A DNA stretch of 63,560 bases, counting the filler, from Octopus bimaculoides (lineage: Eukaryota), in assembly GCF_001194135.2 (NCBI RefSeq). It is 5 parts of 5 records of this genome, joined end to end, with 100 filler letters (N's around TTAATTAATTAA, not from the genome) between each part and the next. Parts side by side here need not be neighbours in the genome. Positions count along the whole stretch, not along the records: positions 27,608 to 50,152 come from NC_069005.1; 4 more parts are not named here. One strand, written 5' to 3'. A program made the position numbers and the translations under genes. The notes under the pieces are model-generated. The model was not told the origin of the DNA and did no database searches. It worked only from the letters and a program-made list of their open reading frames with translations. Numbering within the stretch: the first letter of the stretch is position 1; each line of letters opens with the position of its first letter. Positions 9,609-50,152 of this stretch are shown here, in pieces.

Positions 9609-9950
9609 CTAGAATTAAGAAAACTATTTTAAGTTAAGATCTTTTAAACCATTGTTCAATATGCTTTTGCAACAAAAATTACACCATACACACTACCATC
9701 ATTATCCCATTACATTTGCTTTCCATACTATTAGGGAATGGATAGGTTGTCATGGTTAAATGAGTTCTTATTCTGATCTAGCCCTCCTAGATGGATCTGC
9801 TTTTATGTTTCCTCTTTAGCTTGGTTTCAACAGCAAGATGTCTTTCCTACCACCAACCATTTTACAGAATGTAACGAGTGTATTTTATCACAGCATCAGT
9901 ACTAAAGAGGTTGTCATTTTCTTGACAAGACTAAAGGATTCTCTTTACAT

Positions 9951-10697
9951 AGGCCTCACCGAGGCAATGACTCGTGACTGAGACCTTTGGAAATATGCTG
10001 TGCGTGAGAAGACCTGGCAAGCCAAGTGAGACCATAATCCAAGGCCTCTGCCAGGGGTGTAGCCAGCCCACTTATGCGTACCTTTCCTTCATTGGACACT
10101 AAACTCCGCTTGCAAAGACCTGTTGAGGCAATTGAAATTGAAATCGAACTAAATTCGACGACTGGCACCCATGCCAACATCTCCTTCATTGGACACTAAA
10201 CTTGGCTTGCGAAAACATGTTGGGGCAAGTGAAAGCGAAATCGTGATGGCACCTGTACCAGTGGAGCGCTAAGAGCACCGTCCGAGCGTCATTGTTGCCA
10301 GAGCAGCTATCTGGCTTCCGTGCCAGTGACATGTAAATAGCACCATTTGAGCGTAATTGTTACCAGCGTCGCCTTCCTGGCACTTGTGCCGGTAGCACGT
10401 GAAAAGACATTTGAGCAAGGTCGTTGCCAGTGCTGCTGGATTGGCTCCTGTGCAGGTGGCACATAAAATACACTATTTTGAGCGCGGCTGTTGCCAGTAC
10501 CGCCTGACTGGCCTTCATGCCGGTGGCACGTAAAAGCACCCACTACACTGTCGGAGTGGTTGGCGTTAGGAAGGACATCCAACTGGAGAAACTCTGCCAA
10601 ATCAGATTGGAGCCTGGCGTAGCCATCTGGTTCACCACTCCTCAGTCAAATTGTCCAACCCATGCTAGCATGGAAAGCAGACGATGATGATGATGAT
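9951..10697 (+). mobile_element. RTE LINE 3' end: last ORF2 codons (GLTEAMTRD*DLWKYAVREKTWQAK*) plus the full repeat-rich 3'UTR and (GAT)n tail
   Basis: The ORF2 C-terminus resembles the ends of the 4800 and 23130 elements; tandem ~65-nt units; ttggcgttaggaagg motif; GAT tail. Confidence 0.85.
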
Positions 10698-28425: not shown

Positions 28426-28790
28426 TCATCATCATCATTTAATGTCCACTTTCCATGCTAGTATGGGTTGGATGATTTGACTGAGGACTGGTGAAACCGG
28501 ATGGCTACACCAGGCTCCAATCTGATCTGGCAGAGTTTCTACAGCTGGATGCCCTTCCTAACGCCAACCACTCAGAGAGTGTAGTGGGTGCTTTTACGTG
28601 TCACCCGCATGAAAACGGCCACGCTCGNNNNNNNNNNNNNNNNNNNNNNNNNNNNNNNNNNNNNNNNNNNNNNNNNNNNNNNNNNNNNNNNNNNNNNNNN
28701 NNNNNNNGTCTTTTATGTGCCACCCGCACAAGCCAGTCTAGGGGCACTGGCAACGATCTCACTCGAAAATCCTACGGGAGCCACGATAGC
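28426..28790 (-). mobile_element. RTE LINE 3'UTR copy (gapped)
   Basis: Same terminus as 20500-20735 in reverse orientation. Confidence 0.85.
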
Positions 28791-29167
28791 TTTATGAACT
28801 AAGCCTGAAAGATTGCTTGGAGATACATGACAAGTTATATAAATCTATCAATTTAATGTATTTCAAAGCATGAAACTACTAGTAGCGCTTTTGTAATTAT
28901 ATATATATATATATATTAAATGATACTGAATTTATATATATGAATGTAAAAAGTGGTGGTTGTTGGTAATAAGCAGTATTTAGTGAATTTTGTGAGTTTG
29001 GATGAGTTCCTTGCTGTGGAGGCAGAAGAGGAATCTGGTGTTTTTTCAGTATGCCTCTCTGTCTTAAATGGCACACACACACACTCATGTGAGGATTTAT
29101 GTATATTTGTAAGAACAGAGTTAGGAGATGCAGTAATTGCTATTTTAAGAAGTAATGTGTATGTATG

Positions 29168-29610: not shown

Positions 29611-30598
29611 TAATGTATGTATATGTATACAATAATATATGTATGTATATAAACTCCAACTAAAGAGAACAGGAGAGATTCATGATCAAAATTATCCGTT
29701 TGGTGCTTAGAGAAGTGGAAAGAGTTAATGATGGTGCTTTGGACATTGTCTGTCTTTGGAGTGAAAAAGTGGATGGTAAACCACCCTAAATTGGAAGAAA
29801 AATATCCAATGGGGAATTGCCAACATGTGTTGCTTGTCTGCACAGTTGACATGTTAATTAGATGAGTTTTACAAAGTTAAGTGAATTGGAATTAACTGTG
29901 TAAAACAAACATAGCACACAACAAATGGCTGGTTAGATCAATATCTGGCAATAAAATGAAGTTTTGGATGCTGTCTGTAATGCTGCAGTGTGTCTATGGC
30001 CAAGAGAGTTTAATTCCCTACAGCTGAGTCGACCTGGCTGTAAATAGGCAACACATTGTGTGTAGTTTATTACTGTAAGCTGCACTGATTGCACTGAAAT
30101 TGTTTCACTGGCTTTCTCTGCTAAGTTCAGTTCCTCTGGTGAGCATCAGTTTATGAAAGACTAGCTTCCTATCCTGGTTGAGATTTATTTCTCTTTCACT
30201 TAACATTGTTGAAAACCAGTTAGTTAACTACTCTTTGGATGCAGGTTGTTTGGAAATGTTGTGTAAATGTAAAAATAAATATCTTTGTGATGAGAATAGC
30301 TTGAAAAATCATCTTAAGTCCTTTTAGATAGTTAAACATTAAAAAAAATTAGCTAATTCTTTTGATACCAGCTTGCATAAAATTCTTCTTCTTTAATACA
30401 CAATTCCATTCTAAAGTGTTTGTATTTACATTAAAGCCATTTCCACAGTTTTTATTCCAATGGTATTTGGAACAAAGCTTGAGAAAAGAGAAATTAATAT
30501 TGGTATATTAAACTGGTGTTTGGAAGCTCAGAGAACAACTGTATATTAAGATGGTTATTTACATTTGATGGATATTTGTCCTCATCTTGTTTGTTGTT

Positions 30599-30644
30599 AA
30601 CACAATGTTTCGGCTGATATATCCTCCAGCCTTCATCAGGTGTC
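30599..30644 (-). ncRNA. Minimal type-I hammerhead ribozyme, family 1, stem III mutated (ACAT instead of ACGT)
   Basis: GACAC-CTGATGA-A-GGCTG-gaggatatat-CAGCC-GAAA-CA-TT-GTGTT. Confidence 0.7.
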
Positions 30645-30710
30645 TTGGGGAAATTTCAAACCTGGGTTCTCATTCCTAAGGTATTTTTTGATGTTATAAT
30701 TTAAGGTCAT

Positions 30711-30770
30711 TGCCTGGAATCAAACTCAGAATCTTGGGGTTAGTAGCCTGTGCTCTTAACCATATGCCAG
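30711..30770 (-). promoter_or_regulatory. tRNA-derived Pol III head (A and B boxes) of the HHR element
   Basis: TGGCATATGGTTAAG...GG-CTACTAA-CC...GAGTTTGATTCC; anticodon-loop-like CT-ACT-AA. Confidence 0.65.
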
Positions 30771-30976
30771 TGGGCAATCATGGAGTGAATTTTAGGGTTT
30801 ATAAATCTAATATTTTCCTATCCTGAAGGCTGGATGGTATATCAGCCGAAACTTTGTGTTAACAACAAACAAGATGAGGACAAATATCTGTCAAATGTAA
30901 ATAATGTACATAATTCCTCATCTCTTGAATATAGAACTGTAATATATTAAGATGGTGTTTGGAACAGTTTCTTAGA

Positions 30977-31021
<45 letters not shown>

Positions 31022-32533
31022 GTGTGTGTGTGCCTTTTATATCATTGTGTATGCCTTGTATTATAAAAATCATTTTAATATACCAAAATATATTTGTTTT
31101 TTTTTTTTGTTATATTCCAATCACCAGTCTTAATAATGAACAAATTTATTTTATTAAATCCCTACAAATTCTTGATAATTTTTAAAGACTTGATTGAAAT
31201 GATGTAAAAGGTTGGAACAAGTCAGAAAATATCCCCCAACAAAGGGTTTAGCAGACAAACGTCCAGGTGTCTGCATTTGAGGATTTATAACAGAGGACAT
31301 GGTTTTATCTAAACGGAGAACTGGTGGTGATAACTGCTGTGGTCAAGGCATTGGACAAGGGGTGTTGTGGCATATTTTTCCCAGTGTTTTGCGGTCTGAT
31401 TTCAATTCCTACTGAGATCGACTTTACCTTTTATTCTCCTTGTTTGTGGCAGGAGGGATGAGGGGAGAGGGAGGACGTTTCTAAACTGCACTGGCCGAGG
31501 ACGGTGGACTTGCGGAACCATTGAGCCATTGGATTTCGTGGTATATATTTTGCCACTTGGCATGCCAAGTTCAAATCACATCGAAACCAACTTTGCTTGT
31601 ATTCCAAGATCCACTTTGCCTTTCTTTCTCCTCATTGTTGGGGTGGAGGTCGATAAAGTACACCAGCCCAGGATGGTGGTCTTGTGGAACCATTAAGCCA
31701 TCGGACTAAATGTCTTGTGATGTTACTTTCAGCTTTTTGTGTTCAGAGTTCAAATCCAACCATAGCCTATGTGTTTGGTAGACAACCTGTTGCCTCGTTT
31801 AACTCCCCCACCTGCTACCCTTGGGAGCCTTTAGTGGAGTCCATTTTGTTTCTTTATTTTTATTTATTTAAAAAAATTTTTATATAAGTGTTTAAGCTGA
31901 GCTTCTAATTCAAAAATACCTTCTTCCTTTCCTCCCTCCCTCCTTTGTTCCTTCTAGATTTGGAGGCTCCGCAAAGGGTCAGGAGCTCTGCCCCTCCTTC
32001 CTGACTAAGCAATAAAAAAAAAAAAGACGTGCTTTTAAATTAGCAAAACAAAAAGGGAAAAAATGGAAACAAAGCCTCAATGAGTTTGGTGGGTGAGAAA
32101 AAAACGAAACAAAACGACAGAAGATGATGCAAGTTTGAAGACCGTTGGTTAAACAAGACACTCGTCTAACAAGGTGTTCAGTGTTCAGGGCTTCACTTGT
32201 TGAAATTCTAGATTTTACTTTTGATGACTTGCAAATATGCACCTGCTGATTACTTTTATTATTGTTGTTGTTGTTGTTGTTGGTATTGTTCAGGGGACGC
32301 AAAGCAAGCAGCAAGCACCTCCCACCACAACCAGTTCATTTGTTGACATTGTGCACACACACACCACACACATTCTCACAAACGCATATGTAAATGTGTT
32401 CATGCATACACTTATGTAAATAACATTTACACACACACACACACACAAACACACACCTACATGTCCACTATCACACAATATGTAAACACATTCACACACA
32501 CTTAACCCACGTCCTTTTGTGTGTATGTATATA

Positions 32534-32567
<34 letters not shown>

Positions 32568-32605
32568 CACCCACACACCCAACATTACATCCATCCAGTA
32601 TCTGC

Positions 32606-32665
<60 letters not shown>

Positions 32666-33739
32666 ATATATGTAAATATATGCACACACATACAGGCAAT
32701 GCCATTTGTACAATCGCTCTCTACTTCTCCTCCCNNNNNNNNNNNNNNNNNNNNNNNNNNNNNNNNNNNNNNNNNNNNNNNNNNNNNNNNNNNNNNNNNN
32801 NNNNNNNNNNNNNNNNNNNNNNNNNNNNNNNNNNNNNNNNNNNNNNNNNNNNNNNNNNNNNNNNNNNNNNNNNNNNNNNNNNNNNNNNNNNNNNNNNNNN
32901 NNNNNNNNNNNNNNNNNNNNNNNNNNNNNNNNNNNNNNNNNNNNNNNNNNNNNNNNNNNNNNNNNNNNNNNNNNNNNNNNNNNNNNNNNNNNNNNNNNNN
33001 NNNNNNNNNNNNNNNNNNNNNNNNNNNNNNNNNNNNNNNNNNNNNNNNNNNNNNNNNNNNNNNNNNNNNNNNNNNNNNNNNNNNNNNNNNNNNNNNNNNN
33101 NNNNNNNNNNNNNNNNNNNNNNNNNNNNNNNNNNNNNNNNNNNNNNNNNNNNNNNNNNNNNNNNNNNNNNNNNNNNNNNNNNNNNNNNNNNNNNNNNNNN
33201 NNNNNNNNNNNNNNNNNNNNNNNNNNNNNNNNNNNNNNNNNNNNNNNNNNNNNNNNNNNNNNNNNNNNNNNNNNNNNNNNNNNNNNNNNNNNNNNNNNNN
33301 NNNNNNNGGATTTATAGAATTTTGAGTAAAAATAAGAATATATTGATGCTTCTAATTTTAGACACATTCAGAATCTTAAAATAAAATATGTAGGCACAGG
33401 AGTGGCTGTTTCCCAACCACATGGTTCTGGGTTCAGTCCCACTGTGTGGTACCTTGGGCAAGGGTCTTCTACTATAGCCTTGGGCCGACCAAAGCCTTGT
33501 GAGTGGATTTGGTATATGGAAACTCAAAGAAGCCCATCCTTGACCAAAATTTAAAATGCTAAAGGGTTCAAGCAATCTGTGGATAAGGTTAATTTGCTAA
33601 GGGAAAAGAAAAGTCTGATATCTTTGAGCAGGGTTCCTTGACCGAAATTTCAAATCTCTAGCTCTTAACCCGTCAGTGTTCAATTTACTATGACGAGTGT
33701 AAAGTTTATTTATTCATATTGTCTTCAATTAGCCATGTA

Positions 33740-35190: not shown

Positions 35191-36432
35191 CATGTGCCCC
35201 CCCCCCCCACTTAGTGGTATGTCTCCTGTTATGATGTTTGAGGATTTATCGAAGCTCTTGATGTTGTTGCCGCTATTGTTGTTATTTGTGTCTTGGTCTG
35301 AATTATTTAGAAATACATTGTTTTACCTTTAAATGCCAATTCATTAAATTACAGATTTGTTCCGTTTCCGAGTGGGAGGAAGCTCAGGTAGCTTAGTTTT
35401 ACCTGTCACTTTTACCTTCTGTGACTTACTGCCTCTAAACCCCAGTTCGCCTTCTCTCTCACCTGCTCTCTTCCAAATGATAGAATTAACTATTTATTTA
35501 ATATTCAGGTAAATTAGTTTCACATTTCAAATACCTTTTATTCTCTGTTTGATTAATTACTTTAATCTGCGATGCCAATAGTCATTGATTGGGTTACTTT
35601 AGGAAGTTGTGGATTAACTGTTGCGTTATCATGGTCTTCGCTAAGGTCATTAACTCTTTTGTTACCATTCCAGCATGGAAAATGGGCATTAAAGAATGAT
35701 GATGATGATTTCTGTTGAAGTAAACTGCCTTTGTTTCAATGACTTTGCGAAATAATGAAGAATTTATTAAAATGACTTTGAGCTGGTGTTTGGAATATAA
35801 ATTAGCATGAAATTTTGATGGAAGATTTTAATTTAGATCACTTTAAAATGAGATGTTTGTATTGTAGAACTCTGGGTGGTCTCAGAAAGTGGTTGGCATC
35901 GAAAGAGTTAATCTTTTTGGTATCATCTTTCTATAGAAATACATTCCCTTTGTTTCAATTAATTCTGAAAATGAAGAATTGAGTAAAATTTAAATAACTT
36001 GGCCATTATTAATTAATCTGGTGTTTGGAATGTAAAAGAACATAACATTTTGACTCAAGGTTTTAATTTACATCAGTTGAAAACAGGAAACTTGTGTTCC
36101 ATCAAAGCAGGAACAGTTTCAGGCAGGTTGGCATCAAATAGGTTCACACTTTTTGTTAACCATATTTCTGTTGAAATACATTGCCTTTCATCATCATCAT
36201 CATCATCATTTAACATGTTTTCCATGCTGGCATGGGTTGGACAGTTTGACCGGAGCCATTAAGGCCAGGGACTGCTCTAGGTTCCATTGTCTGTTCTAAC
36301 ATGGTTCCTATGATTAAATGCTCTTCCCAATGGACAAAAAAAAAGAAAATTCTTGGTTGTTTATATCAGTGTGGTAAATTTCCAGAAAAAAAACACTATA
36401 AAATGTTTATGCAATTATGTGTTATTTTTTTA

Positions 36433-37985: not shown

Positions 37986-38156
37986 TGTGATAATTTTGCT
38001 GCTTTTAAATAAAGCNNNNNNNNNNATGGGAACGCGAAACTCTGAGTAACAGTTTTTGTGATAATTTTGCTGCTTTTAAATAAAGCATATTACTCTACCT
38101 CTGGTATTTGAGTACTCTTTTTTCCACCTTGTTGCACATTTATGTGCTTACTCCGG

Positions 38157-38197
<41 letters not shown>

Positions 38198-39099
38198 ATA
38201 AATAAAATATGTGTGTATAATGTATGCATTCGTATTTGATGTATGTATGTAGTTTATAAATTCTCTTGGATTTTGGTTCTTTTTATTCCATATTTTCCCT
38301 TTTCGAGGGAATTCCTCTGAGATTGCTAAAAAAAAAAAATTCAAATTATTTTCAATTCCACCCTTTTTGTTCAGATATTTTGTGTGTTTGTGTGTTCCCA
38401 TATTTTAGGACCTCCCCCCTCCTCCTCATGCATAAATTTACTTCCTGGTAAACATTCCTTCAAGTAATTAAGTGAGACTGAGGCTAATAGATTGATTGTT
38501 AGATATAAATTGTAATGTTCTGGTTTCCTTGTGAAAAGGTTAGATTTTTTATTGCCAGAGGGAGTAAGGGATAATAGAGACAACAGCCGGGGTAATGGCT
38601 GGCTGGTTGGTCGGTAGGTGAGCCGTTGGTTCCTTTAAAAGCCATTGTTGTGGTTATTTTATATCGTTGTTAATATTTGATATTTCTGAGGTTCTGATAT
38701 GTTTCTTTACATCTTGAAAATTGATACCCTCCCCAACGTGGAATGTCTTTGGTATTTCTGAGGTAAGAAACGATGAGTGTTTGTGTGGCTGAGTGGTTAG
38801 GGAGTTTGCTTACCAACCCTTCTATTATGGCCCTGGGTTAAGCAATACCTTGTGAGAAGATTTGGTAGACAGAAACTCAAACAAGTTTGTCTTTATCTTC
38901 GAAACGTCTAGTTAGAATAGAGGCAGCTGACGAAGGATTAATTCCAAGTGGCTATCTGTTTTCCTATGTGTTCGTCCCGTGGTCTGTAGTTCATTTTCCC
39001 AACGTCCTGTAACTTGATATGCATCTATATACACATGTAGATGTGTGTATACATGCATACATATTCTTTGTATTTTATATATATATATATATATAAAAG

Positions 39100-41487: not shown

Positions 41488-41672
41488 GATATCGTGGGTG
41501 TTACGTTCCAAAAGCCCCCACAGAAATAATTGAAATTTCCCCAAAATATAAATTCCTCTTGGCTGCAGAAACCTGTGATATATTGAGGTGTCTGCGAATA
41601 AATTTACATACATTAAGCAGAAAAATCCATGATGTACTGAGTGCACGATAGGTGAACCATGATATGGTTAGG
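41488..41672. mobile_element. Tigger/pogo-like MITE remnant
   Basis: Terminal gaaccatgatatggttagggattactgta and internal gttacgttccaaaagcccc. Confidence 0.4.
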
Positions 41673-41704
41673 GATTACTGTAATCCAAAACAAAAAAATA
41701 AGTA

Positions 41705-41850
41705 CATTATTTACATTTGACGGATATTTGTCCTCATCTTGTTTGTTGTTAACACAACGTTTCGGCTGATATACCCTCCAGCCTTCATCAGGTGTCTTGG
41801 GGAAATTTTGAACCTGGGTTCTCAGTCCTAAGGTATTTTTCTATGTTATT
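41705..41850 (-). mobile_element. 5'-truncated copy of the family-1 HHR element
   Basis: Nearly identical to 30556-30700. Confidence 0.85.
41751..41796 (-). ncRNA. Structurally intact minimal type-I hammerhead ribozyme, family 1
   Basis: GACAC-CTGATGA-A-GGCTG-gagggtatat-CAGCC-GAAA-CG-TT-GTGTT: complete core, 5-bp stem I, 5-bp stem II, palindromic ACGT stem III, GUU site. Confidence 0.8.
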
Positions 41851-41899
41851 AATAATAATAACACACGACTGGCTTCTTTTTACTTTCAAAAGCATGTGA

Positions 41900-42130
41900 G
41901 TATGGCCGATGCCAGTACCACCTGACTGGCCCTCGTGCCTGTGGCACGTAAAAGCACCCACTACACTCTCGGAATGGTTGGTGTTGGGAAGGGCATCCAG
42001 CTGTAGAAACCTTGCCAGATCAGATTGGAGCCTGGTGCAGCCTTCTGGCTCGCTAGCCCTCAGTCAAACCGTCCAACCCATGCCAGCATGGAAAGTGGAT
42101 GTTAAATGACGACAATGATGATGATGATGC
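41900..42130 (+). mobile_element. RTE LINE 3'UTR terminal fragment
   Basis: Same terminus as 10480-10697; GAT tail. Confidence 0.85.
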
Positions 42131-46099: not shown

Positions 46100-46794
46100 G
46101 TGTCATAATTTGGTATCCGTATTCCATGTTCAACAAGGATGTATTGGAAAAAAAAACCCCCCAAAACACCCAATGAAACAGTCTTGAATAAAAATGCTGA
46201 TACTGGAATTTTTGGTTGTGTTGGTTCCCAAGAATAATATCCAAAGGAAAATCCAGTTCCTCTGACAAAGTCTCACTCCCAGACATTTGGCACCGATCAA
46301 CCTTTGCAATAATCCTGCACTAATTCTCTTAGTCATTATGTTGCTAGAGTTTTTTGTGTTAATTGAAATGGTATTTAAGATAATTTCGCTAACGGATCTA
46401 TGCACTCTATTACTCTTTTGAGTCATTGGACTGTGGCCATCCTGGAGCATGTCTTGATCCTGAAAGAAATAGTTTTTTTTTTTTTTAAATTTGACATTTT
46501 TTTTTTGTTTTTGTGGTTTTGTACTGGATACTTAATTTAATTGTGACATGGTTGTTTAATTACTCAGACATTCCAAAGAACTTTCTCCAATGGTTTTTTT
46601 GTTTCAAGAATATAAACTGTAATTGAAGGGAGATTTGGCTGCTATTTCTAGCTGGTTGCCGGAGACACTGTAGAGCAGGGATTCTCAACCATTTCGATTA
46701 TGCCTTTGGACCCCTTTGATCCCTATATTACTCTCCTGGACCCTCAGCCCTTTTATACTTTTGAAAAATCCTATTCTATTTTCATAATATTATA

Positions 46795-47142
46795 GTTGTG
46801 GCTGAGTGGTAAGAAGTTTGCTTCCAAAGTACATGGTTCCAGGTTCAGTCCCACTGTGCGACAACTTGGGCAATTGTTTTTTACTGTAGCCTCAGACCAA
46901 CCAAAGCCTTGTGAATAGATGGAAACTGAAAGAAGCCTGTGTGTGTGTGTGTGTTTCTGTTTGTCCCCTATCACCACTTGACAACCGGTGTTGGTGTGTT
47001 TACATCCTCGTAACTTAGCAGTTCCGCAAAAGAGACCAATAGAATAAGTACTAAGCTTAAAAATAAGTTCTGGGGTTGATTTGCTCGACTAAAACCCTCC
47101 AAGGCAGTGCTCCGGCATGGCCGCAGTCAAATAACTGAAACT
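46795..47142 (+). mobile_element. SINE family A copy
   Basis: Head gtggctgagtggtaagaagtttgcttcc through tail ggccgcagtcaaataactgaaac. Confidence 0.8.
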
Positions 47143-50118
47143 AAGATAATTATATCAGAAAATTGTTAGAATATTTTGTGTCTTGTAGAAATAGAACCAG
47201 TTTGTTGCCCATGCTTTTGAACAACAAACTCCTTAATGTAGGGCTGTGAATTAAGCTGTCCCTTTTCATCCAGGACCTAAGTTACTGTAAAATAAAACCA
47301 CCCCTCGAAAACCTACATTTACAGGGTAAAGAAATAAAAATGCAGAAAAAAACTTTCTCAACTCACTTTCCCACACTTTTATTTCCCTGTCATTGTAACA
47401 ATGGTGAATTGCTTGAAAGGTCTCAGAATTGATGAAAAAGATAGAATAAAATAAAATAAAATATAGTGTTTGGGGTTGTGTGAAAAGAGGGTGACTAGCT
47501 AGGGTATGTGTATAAATAAAGTACCCTTTTTTTTTTGTTTTTTGACCCAGTCCAAACACAGTAATTTATTTCAGTGATGTTGTTGAATATTTTGGTGACA
47601 CTTGAATGAACAATTGTTGTGTCTAAGTAAAGCCAGCGACTCACTGCCTGCCTGACTGCCTCAGATACCTGGGTATTCAATACAGACAAGGTGATGGGTA
47701 GAAAGTTAATTATCAGAGCCATGTGAATTTTTAGGAAGGTTTTGGAAAGAAAAGAAAAATGAAATAAAAAGTTAAAATCCATTTAATTTGATTTGACCTT
47801 TTTGACACCAGTCTGTTGTGGAAGACCACCCTTTCTGTCATGTAAAAGAAAAAAAAAAAAACCTGTCCCTTTTAAAATCTTTTATTAAACTGTGACCATG
47901 CTGGGGCACCACTTTCAAGAATTTTTTAGTCGTATGAATCAACCCTCAGTATTTTTTATTTATTTTAAATCCTAGTACTTTATTCTGTTGGTCTATTTTG
48001 CCGAACTGCGAAGTTATGGGGACATAAACATACCAACACCGGTTGTCAAATAGTGGATGATGCAAACGAGAGAGGATCTTGTTTCTAAAGTGTTGTACGT
48101 ATTTTTTGCGGGGGGTGGGGTGAAGTGGTAATGGCTTCTATGTCCCTTTCTTCANNNNNNNNNNNNNNNNNNNNNNNNNNNNNNNNNNNNNNNNNNNNNN
48201 NNNNNNNNNNNNNNNNNNNNNNNNNNNNNNNNNNNNNNNNNNNNNNNNNNNNNNNNNNNNNNNNNNNNNNNNNNNNNNNNNNNNNNNNNNNNNNNNNNNN
48301 NNNNNNNNNNNNNNNNNNNNNNNNNNNNNNNNNNNNNNNNNNNNNNNNNNNNNNNNNNNNNNNNNNNNNNNNNNNNNNNNNNNNNNNNNNNNNNNNNNNN
48401 NNNNNNNNNNNNNNNNNNNNNNNNNNNNNNNNNNNNNNNNNNNNNNNNNNNNNNNNNNNNNNNNNNNNNNNNNNNNNNNNNNNNNNNNNNNNNNNNNNNN
48501 NNNNNNNNNNNNNNNNNNNNNNNNNNNNNNNNNNNNNNNNNNNNNNNNNNNNNNNNNNNNNTTGTGCATTTAGAATCTTTGTGAAAGACTTTGGAGGCTT
48601 TTGTTTATTGCCCGTGGGGGTGGGGTGGGGTGCGGGGTTATATTGGTTGTTGTTGTTGTGCATTAGATCTGACACCTTTTTAGTTGTGTATTGTATCGTG
48701 TTAGGTAACTGCCAGTCAGCTCTACCACAATGGATATATGTATGTGTGTATGTGTATATATGTGTGAGTGTGCATGTGTGTGGGCGTGTGTGTATATATG
48801 TGTATGGGCGTGTGTGTGTATATGTGTGTGCATATGTGTGTATGTGTGTGTCTGTGTGTGTGTGTGTGTATTTGTATGTGTGTGTGTCTGCCTGTCTGTG
48901 TAGGCATAGCTGTATGGTAAGAAGTTAGCTTTGCAATCAAATGGTTCTGGGTTCAATTCCACAGTGTAGCACCTTGAGCAAGTTATCGTCGTGTGTCTAC
49001 ATGTACCTCCTAATAGAGAGGAGAGATATATACACAAAAACTATTTATTTGTGTATAAGTTGCACTATTTTATATTTGATTTTTAATTGTGACATATGTA
49101 TGGGGCAAAAATAAAACTATGTAGTGGAAAAATTTTGTACCAAAATTTAATGTTAAATTAGGGATGCGACTTACACATGAGAAAATATGGTGTGTGTGTG
49201 TAATCTTGGCTTGACCCTTATTTCACTTATCCCCTAATAAGGTTTCTCAGTTCCCTTTGATATTTTTCAATTATCCAGGCTTAGCCAGATTGATAACGTG
49301 CCGACACTGACTTTCATATACTTTGAAATTAAACTGTTGATACCAGCTGATAATGAACTAAGGTCAAACGGGTGGAGAACAGTTTAATTAGGTCAACGAA
49401 CGGGTTAATTTAGTCAGTGATATAAACAACAAAACAATGTCGATTCGTTGCTGGTTTCGAAACGATCCTTTTTGCATGTCGTATTTACAAAGATTTACTG
49501 ATTGACAAACGGAAATAAAAATTATGTAGGGGTCGCAGACTCTATAGTCTTTAATTTATAGAAATGGTAAAGGTGCAGACTTGGCAGAATCGTTAGCATG
49601 CGGGGCAAAAATGCTTAATGACATTTCATCTATTTTTACATTCTAAGCTCAGATTCTGCTGAGGTCGACTTTGCCTTTCATCCTTTTAGGGCCAACAAAA
49701 ATAAGTACCAGTGACGTATTGGAGGGAGGTGGGCGATGTGCCAAAATTTGAAACCAGTTTCTTGAAATAAGAATAATTGGAATATATTTGACTCTTTCTG
49801 ATATTTTTTATAGACATGACCCTGTAAACTGAATTCTGTTGCTATAGTCTCCATGGAAACAGAAACGTCTGGAATCACTTGATTCTTTCATTTTAAATCA
49901 AATGTTTTATGTTCCGTTTTGCCAGTTTTTGTTTGTTGCTCAAAACTAGAAATAAAAACCAACACAATTAACCGATATTAGCTTGGTTAATTGCACATGC
50001 AATTAACCAAGTGCGTTTGCATAATGGTTCAGTGTTTTCAAGAGTTATTCAATTAACCATCTTGTATACATGCACGTGCGTGTATGTATGTATGTATGTA
50101 TGTATGTATGTATGTATG

Positions 50119-50152
<34 letters not shown>

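Follow-up and report, generated by a model that had tools for sequence, protein, structure and literature searches.

How does a short non-coding insertion in an octopus genome come to combine a tRNA-like head, a hammerhead ribozyme (HHR) and insertion scars resembling those of Penelope-like elements (PLEs)? The question is raised by an element at positions 30542-30956 of a 63,560-nt window, the whole stretch of DNA analyzed here, which joins five parts of the Octopus bimaculoides assembly GCF_001194135.2. The element, which we call el1, lies in the 22.5-kb piece 27608-50152 (NC_069005.1), and the same piece contains a sibling copy, el2, at 41849-41696. We conclude that el1 is probably an old, decaying copy of a non-autonomous octopod retroposon family, in which a tRNA-related short interspersed element (SINE) is joined to a ~180-nt 3' module of the type found in the pseudo-long terminal repeats (pLTRs) of PLEs. 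The module comprises a conserved stretch, a minimal type-I hammerhead (min-HHR) and a tail. Judged from sequence, the best explanation is that a tRNA-type SINE was mobilized in dependence on a PLE, and we hold it to be likely. It is favored by the combination of PLE-type insertion scars with a PLE-type min-HHR in the 3' module, while twin priming by LINEs (long interspersed nuclear elements) and movement as a DNA transposon are disfavored, because they would not give the observed pattern of an inverted copy with a one-sided tail.

The insertion anatomy of el1 is well preserved. Reading of both strands and a repeat finder show a 387-bp insert between target-site duplications (TSDs). The insert is non-coding, and there is no open reading frame (ORF) longer than 44 aa in the main copy. 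On the minus strand, the insert consists of the reverse complement of the plus-strand arm followed by the main copy, 30821 to 30556. The original prediction described this locus as an insert with Penelope-style inverted arms, flanked by a 14-bp TSD and bearing a 5'-truncated second arm that starts inside the hammerhead core, and the description holds. The two TSD copies match exactly at 14 of 14 positions. The second copy begins at 30822 within the core (CCTGA^AGGCTGG), and of CUGAUGA it lacks the second TGA. The repeat finder aligns the inverted arms (30555-30635 and 30824-30904) over 81 nt with 94% complementarity. The tail of el1 is extended on one side only, by 38 bp in the inverted arm, and this extension is family sequence that we also find in the protein match P0001 and in the fetched loci L001, L006 (inverted arm), L009 and L012. 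PLE insertions have been described as carrying, right beside the 5' end, an inverted copy that is itself 5'-truncated, together with a 30-40-bp tail at one end only (Craig et al. 2021, PMC8557442); since both features match, the anatomy of el1 reads as PLE-style. The same anatomy recurs in L006, L011 and L012. TSD length is typically variable in PLE insertions, and it varies across this family too, from 14 bp in el1 to 10 bp (ATAAATAGTA) in L006. The repeat finder detected neither a direct tandem nor a partial head-to-tail (pLTR-like) tandem at the el1 locus.

The target of el1 has some history of its own. An older local duplication is visible around it, in which 30504-30525 resembles 30943-30964 (and 30451-30472), with TATATTAAACTGGTGTTTGGAA against TATATTAAGATGGTGTTTGGAA; despite this duplication, the true TSD of el1 is the exact 14-mer only. 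The pre-insertion site has a (TG)n(TA)n microsatellite about 20 bp away. Considered together with the position of the L012 3' end beside (CA)n(TA)n, this may reflect a preference for microsatellite targets, as reported for some PLEs.

The hammerhead was identified with a descriptor written in the spirit of PMC4209133, which asks in turn for helix I (4 bp or more), CUGANGA, a bulge that may be absent, helix II (again 4 bp or more, including G10.1-C11.1), GAAA, A-(N)-U and H. Only two matches were returned in the 22.5-kb piece: one in el1, whose span of 30644-30599 is exactly that of the type-I hammerhead proposed originally, and one in el2. The descriptor had no match in 3000 dinucleotide shuffles. 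In el1, helix I has 5 bp, helix II has 6 bp and the helix II loop has 8 nt. The catalytic boxes CUGAUGA...GAAA...U, in type-I order and with the H17 site, are present in el1, in el2 and in the consensus of 14 copies. A bulged A separates A9 from the G10.1-C11.1 pair, and the bulge column is A in 14 of 14 aligned copies. The features of PLE min-HHRs that go beyond such a descriptor are a nucleotide separating A9 from G10.1, the pairing of G10.1 with C11.1 and a palindromic 15.2-16.2 (Cervera & de la Pena 2014, PMC4209133). The palindromic helix III and the GUU cleavage site that had been predicted apply to el2 and to the family consensus and fail in el1 itself. The palindrome is ACGU in el2, L003, L011 and the consensus; in el1 the corresponding letters are ACAU (main copy) and ACUU (inverted arm). 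As cleavage triplet, el2 and the consensus have GUU and el1 has AUU. The el1 palindrome was broken by the change G16.2>A, a case of CpG decay, from which it appears that the ribozyme of el1 is probably dead.

Helices I and II are present in the minimum free energy structure, both for the hammerhead alone and in its 266-nt context, and the cofold of a hammerhead dimer gives a domain-swapped duplex only. In the 14 copies, which come from three families, 80.5% of the hammerhead cells pair, compared with 18-47% for slid registers. Only one pair, in helix II, carries a double change between families, from U-A to C-G. Exact-pattern scans for the hammerhead and the tail returned no matches in metagenome, viral and GTDB genome contigs.

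The 5' part of the main copy resembles a tRNA. On the minus strand it contains the A and B boxes of the original prediction, which stand at tRNA spacing. With criteria that were fixed after the sequence had been seen, a scan of the piece for A and B boxes gives 3 matches against 0.19 expected, and when a 6-bp closing stem is included, the el1 head is the sole match, against 0.01 expected. The other two matches are the heads of unrelated octopus SINEs, at 46799-46852 and 35192-35137. They belong to two further tRNA-headed families in the piece, a very abundant octopus SINE (46790-46935, plus strand) and a second one that starts with GGGCACATGGCCTAGTGGTTAG (35205-34950, minus strand). Conserved counterparts of the el1 head occur in both L004 copies, in L010 and in L012. 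The predicted lack of a TTTT terminator between head and tail extends to the whole sense strand of the 387-bp insert, and the first TTTT occurs 69 nt into the downstream flank.

The 5' ends vary among relatives of el1. L006 starts at model position ~31-33, at or just upstream of the head, and L011 and six ORFs of the related family C (described below) start at it exactly. In all six the head is read in antisense up to its 5' terminus (peptide MCPAG) and passes directly into a sense arm, the sense arms having differing start positions; this is in keeping with transcription from a defined point at the head. El1 and L004 share a conserved leader of ~40-45 nt, upstream of their tRNA-like part; the presence of a homologous stretch in L004 indicates that the leader is family sequence and not filler. 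From these sequence features we infer transcription of the family by RNA polymerase III (Pol III): the boxes, the defined 5' ends of relatives and the absence of T4 speak for it, and the leader counts against it. The coordinates of all features are collected in Table 1.

Table 1. Features of el1 and el2, in positions of the whole window.
Feature	Position	Strand	Basis or remark
Left TSD, TATATTAAGATGGT	30542-30555	.	14/14 exact match to 30943-30956
Main copy of el1, 266 bp: leader, tRNA-like head, linker, 3' module with hammerhead, short tail	30556-30821	-	
Short form of the 3' tail (AACAACAAACAAGATGAGGACAAATATCCATCAAATGTAAATAA), 43 nt	30556-30598	-	Block without differences in three window copies
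Minimal type-I hammerhead, GACAC CUGAUGA (A) GGCUGG-loop-UCAGCC GAA A-CA-U U / GUGUU	30599-30644	-	Descriptor scan
A/T-rich linker, then the start of the conserved 3' module (ATAACATC...GGTTTGAAATTTCCCCAA)	30645-30699	-	
tRNA-like head, closing stem ATTGCC/GGCAAT	30700-30782	-	A+B scan with shuffles; aligned to the two other SINE heads in the piece
B box AGTTTGATTCC	30726-30716	-	A+B scan; 43 nt from A box, start to start
A box TGGCATATGG	30769-30760	-	A+B scan
5' leader with TTTATAAA motif	30783-30821	-	Homologous to L004 640-690 (CTAAAATTCACTCCAT...)
Inverted, 5'-truncated second copy of el1	30822-30942	+	
Second copy, hammerhead remnant without UGA of the core	30822-30860	+	
Second copy, tail	30861-30904	+	
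Second copy, 38-bp extension past the end point of the main-copy tail	30905-30942	+	
Right TSD, TATATTAAGATGGT	30943-30956	.	14/14 exact match to 30542-30555
el2, 5'-truncated, headless family copy	41696-41849	-	BLAST, 94%
Intact min-HHR of el2 (ACGU palindrome, GUU triplet)	41796-41751	-	Descriptor match

The sibling el2 provides a reference for the decay of el1. Over 81 nt, el2 equals the inferred ancestor of both el1 arms. Each arm has three differences from el2, two of which are confined to that arm; the remaining site, where neither arm matches el2, is alignment position 30 (of 81 nt), the G of ACGU. The Kimura two-parameter distance between the el1 arms is 0.065, and several of the differing sites are CpG. 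A divergence of ~3.7% per arm, read against a rough published calibration (a Jukes-Cantor distance of 0.065 for about 18 My, PMC13282606), suggests that el1 was inserted roughly 10 My ago. The element spacer has an exact inverted match of 15 nt (TTGAAATTTCCCCAA) at 41530-41544 (E 0.026), some 150 bp beyond el2 on its 3' side, which could be either coincidental or what is left of an inverted arm. Immediately upstream of el2, at 41860-42110 on the minus strand, is a different repeated element (...CATCCACTTTCCATGCTGGCATGGGTTGGACGGTTTGAC...), which occurs also around 28491-28802 and 36050-36262.

The claim that el1 belongs to a repeated retroelement family is well founded, the copies not being few: they occur in the window, elsewhere in O. 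bimaculoides and in octopod contigs from Logan. A protein word-index search with a tail peptide matched two proteins only, both of O. bimaculoides (P0001 and P0002), and the P0001 peptide includes the 38-nt extension; the same search with an antisense-head peptide and with a concatenation of all other frames gave no match. A profile search of a representative library matched 132 ORFs, which we sorted into family A, the octopus type (~14), family B (7), family C (88) and an unclassified remainder of 23, two of them plain false positives. The Logan contigs, from runs SRR11869385-94, carry family A copies together with the major octopus SINE, and the presence of this SINE on the same contigs indicates that the runs come from an octopod. 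Families B and C were found on contigs of the ENA assembly ERZ21867824, which have a GC content of ~35%. Over 37 kb, this assembly and the window have nothing in common except the present module.

The linkage between head and hammerhead tail, which the original prediction expected to persist in a consensus, is indeed retained there, and is seen in el1, L004 (two copies), L010, L006, L012 and L011. In L006, the 5' part of the head is followed by an expanded A-rich linker. Four copies (el2, L008, L009 and the 3' segment of L006) start at the linker, at model positions 122-125, and are either truncated or represent a headless form. Over 68 nt, covering the hammerhead and the start of the tail, el1 is ~81-85% identical to the family C unit of L003 and L011. 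In family B, L012 2606-3190 has a head and a hammerhead homologous to those of the octopus element, and its 3' end adjoins the (CA)n(TA)n microsatellite mentioned above; its tail, compared by eye, is closely like the octopus tail, extension included.

Inverted arms are likewise not confined to el1. They measure 46 nt in L006 (80%, flanked by the 10-bp TSD), 140 nt in L012 (94%) and 75+19 nt in L011 (95-100%), and the junction between an antisense and a sense arm is crossed by ten ORFs or more. The asymmetry between a long and a short tail, 38 nt in el1, recurs in L011, whose arm is longer by ~34 nt. We considered and rejected the idea that the inverted arm has a fixed breakpoint in the hammerhead core, because arms elsewhere start at model positions ~64, ~150 and ~231. 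At the L011 locus of family C (9745-10195), a full-length antisense copy and an inverted sense arm meet at the terminus of the head. The fetched family A copies all have one sense hammerhead per element and no direct tandem. Family C has two or three tandem hammerhead units with a period of 125 nt, as in L003 10089-10130 and 10214-10255, which are 95% identical; tandem 3' units occur in this family only, in ten ORFs with at least two units. The L003 copy as a whole (10084-10340) is composed of a tRNA-like head (GCAGGACACATGGCGTAACGG...GGTTCAATCC), a body of ~150 nt and two tandem min-HHR units.

These observations can be accommodated in a scheme of PLE-dependent mobilization. A master copy would be transcribed by Pol III from its internal A and B boxes, and without a T4 terminator on the sense strand transcription would run on through the ribozyme and the tail. 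The 3' module would be recognized by the reverse transcriptase (RT)/GIY-YIG endonuclease of an autonomous PLE. A staggered break at the site of integration would produce the TSDs seen in el1 (14 bp) and L006 (10 bp), and a PLE-style resolution would account for the observed inverted 5'-truncated copy at the 5' end and the observed extension of 34-38 bp at one end. The hammerhead would be a part of the module common to the SINE and its PLE partner. Its 1-bp helix III and ACGU palindrome would allow cleavage as a dimer only, leaving a lone SINE transcript largely intact, and the tandem units of family C could release monomers of ~125 nt.

Several results weigh against this interpretation. ARAGORN reports no tRNA in the head down to a threshold of 70% and only a poor model at 60%, the Rfam tRNA model does not match the head in windows of 71-101 nt at E<=10, and the T stem is poor even in the multi-copy alignment. 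Rfam was also named in the original prediction as a source of hammerhead models, specifically Hammerhead_1 and HH9; neither these nor HH10 and the other Rfam hammerhead families match windows of 71-521 nt or the whole piece at E<=10. The ARAGORN and Rfam negatives carry little weight, because both tools likewise miss the two other obvious SINE heads in the piece and because PLE min-HHRs lack the helix III that Rfam models expect. The covariation of the hammerhead is not significant, with 123 of 500 shuffles reaching the observed score. Core mutations are found in most single copies, so that activity is arguable for the consensus only; such mutations are to be expected of dead retroposon copies. 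The ~40-45 nt conserved upstream of the head in el1 and L004 are not expected in a Pol III transcript that starts at the head. Finally, no autonomous PLE with the 3' end of the element turned up, in searches none of which was aimed at PLEs.

The upstream leader, together with the rejection of the head by tRNA detectors, would be easier to understand if el1 were a heavily 5'-truncated autonomous PLE, with the "tRNA-like head" being a part of the PLE 3' UTR or pLTR and not a SINE promoter. Truncation at the 5' end is usual for PLEs (PMC8557442), and both el1 and L004 do reach beyond the head. However, independent copies stop at the head or just upstream of it, in L006, L011 and the six family C ORFs. 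No copy runs further upstream into coding sequence, and there is no Pfam match to an RT or GIY-YIG domain on any fetched locus. We consider this explanation unlikely.

The original prediction viewed el1 as a hybrid of a SINE and a retrozyme. The SINE part of this view is upheld by the linkage of head and hammerhead in several copies. The retrozyme part, taken strictly, would make the locus a permuted or partial multimer of a tandem hammerhead repeat that self-cleaves, circularizes and replicates by rolling circle, and for el1 and family A we find this improbable. These copies have a single sense hammerhead each, the second hammerhead of el1 is inverted and truncated so that no unit-length RNA could be excised, and the RNA fold is ordinary (z = -0.72). 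About 50 nt upstream of the head had been thought to fit a circularly permuted or tandem monomer; this stretch is the conserved leader shared with L004, which neither resembles the element tail nor continues it. In the comparison with the tail, sequence upstream of L004 scores lower than the mean of the shuffles, and circular permutation or a tandem arrangement was rejected for family A. What the retrozyme view has in its favor comes from family C with its tandem units, and from a 2026 preprint that derives animal retrozymes from PLE pLTRs. For family C itself a retrozyme reading is plausible, and through its tandems the superfamily remains linked to retrozymes.

It is very unlikely that el1 is an ordinary tRNA SINE mobilized by a LINE, with an inversion due to twin priming and a hammerhead that is a chance motif. 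Octopus genomes are rich in SINEs, mostly unclassified (PMC13282606), and the hammerhead covariation is weak. However, twin priming inverts a different, more 5' segment, whereas here the same 3' sequence occurs twice, and does so in four loci; the hammerhead motif, absent from all of the shuffles, is conserved with its unusual bulge across three families. A miniature inverted-repeat transposable element or foldback DNA transposon would explain the 81-bp terminal inverted repeats and the flanking direct repeat, but is hardly credible given unequal arms (one 38 bp longer, the other running on into 188 bp of unique sequence), a TSD length that differs between copies (14 versus 10 bp) and the many single-arm copies (el2, L008, L010).

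PLE-dependent mobilization of a tRNA-type SINE is thus the reading that we retain for el1. A broader generalization is more tentative, and we rate it as possible, short of probable: cephalopods, or at least octopods, would harbor a superfamily of Pol III tRNA-type SINEs that are mobilized by a PLE and not by a LINE, with the min-HHR residing in a shared 3' module for recognition and processing and with one branch having acquired tandem, retrozyme-like units. SINEs are classified by the LINE whose tail is borrowed. If correct, the present case would be the first explicit SINE-PLE partnership, as far as the searched literature shows, and a direct structural bridge among SINEs, retrozymes and PLE pLTRs. 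In that literature we found no element with a tRNA-type head, a PLE min-HHR tail and PLE insertion scars, and no hammerhead or PLE link for cephalopod SINEs. What appears to be new, judged from sequence and against the searched literature, is the union of tRNA head, PLE min-HHR and PLE scars in one element; Sm-alpha, Sj-alpha and the PLE min-HHRs were known.

The role of PLE hammerheads and the mobilizer of animal retrozymes are open questions in the field (PMC7761336, PMC8557442, 2026 preprint), and the 2026 preprint makes the case for a PLE origin of retrozymes. An element that is short and abundant and joins a ribozyme, a defined 5' end and PLE-specific scars, with sister families having single and tandem ribozymes, would be a tractable system for studying the role of the ribozyme in recognition, 3'-end processing or circle formation, the origin of inverted copies in PLE integration, and retrozymes as multimerized SINE tails. 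In the repeat annotation of O. vulgaris, 893 of 900 recently active SINE families are unclassified (PMC13282606), and the present family may account for a part of this unclassified load in octopus genomes. Gene annotation is also touched. At least one family copy is annotated as the N-terminus of a predicted dystrobrevin isoform: in P0002 ("dystrobrevin beta isoform X1", GCA_001194135.2), a predicted isoform of 94 aa, residues 1-33 are translated from a family copy, antisense head first and sense hammerhead arm after it. This N-terminus is either an exonized copy or an annotation artifact.

The rest of the piece 27608-50152 contains no convincing protein-coding ORF. It includes 1090 N in several runs (e.g. 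~32730-33300 and ~48140-48570), which are scaffold gaps typical of short-read assembly. Matches to the Rfam families mir-297/466/3149/5014 at 32385-32700, 50056-50152, 38132-38202 and 39016-39085 were dismissed as (TG)n/(TA)n microsatellites scoring well below the gathering thresholds.

Among known systems, OK, OR1 and OR2 are tRNA-derived SINE families of octopus (Ohshima & Okada 1994). The present family could be one of them or a relative, and the literature consulted mentions no hammerhead or PLE link for them. Nearest to the octopus element are the hammerhead SINEs of schistosomes and the min-HHRs of PLEs. In Schistosoma, Sm-alpha and Sj-alpha are hammerhead-bearing and SINE-like, and are called as tRNA-Gln by tRNAscan (PMC2770079). 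Like the octopus element, they are short non-coding retroposons with a tRNA-derived, Pol III-type head and a type-I hammerhead (Ferbeyre 1998; Laha 2000; in PMC2770079). A high copy number and the occurrence of both dispersed and tandem copies are further points of likeness. The Sm-alpha hammerhead is canonical, has loop-loop contacts and cleaves efficiently. The octopus hammerhead, compared with it by description, is of the minimal PLE type, with a 1-bp helix III, a bulge after A9 and a predicted dependence on dimerization. The octopus family also differs from Sm-alpha and Sj-alpha in its cephalopod host and in an explicit PLE-style signature of inverted-copy insertion.

With the min-HHRs of PLE pLTRs (PMC4209133; Lunse et al. 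2017), the octopus hammerhead has in common its core boxes, a nucleotide left unpaired after A9 and before G10.1, the G10.1-C11.1 pair, a helix I of 4-5 bp, the palindromic 15.2-16.2 (in el2 and the consensus) and the frequent arrangement of motifs in pairs 100-700 bp apart on opposite strands. It differs in having a helix II of 6 bp, against 7-8 bp in the schistosome families, and in being part of an element of ~300 bp that has a tRNA-like head and no RT/endonuclease ORF. Animal non-LTR retrozymes (Cervera & de la Pena 2020, PMC7229834; Li et al. 2026 preprint) are likewise non-autonomous, hammerhead-bearing and proposed to depend on PLEs, and family C approaches them in its tandem organization. 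Retrozymes have tandem hammerhead units that give rise to circular RNAs, with no tRNA-like head reported, whereas the octopus family combines a single hammerhead with a Pol III-type head and ordinary folding.

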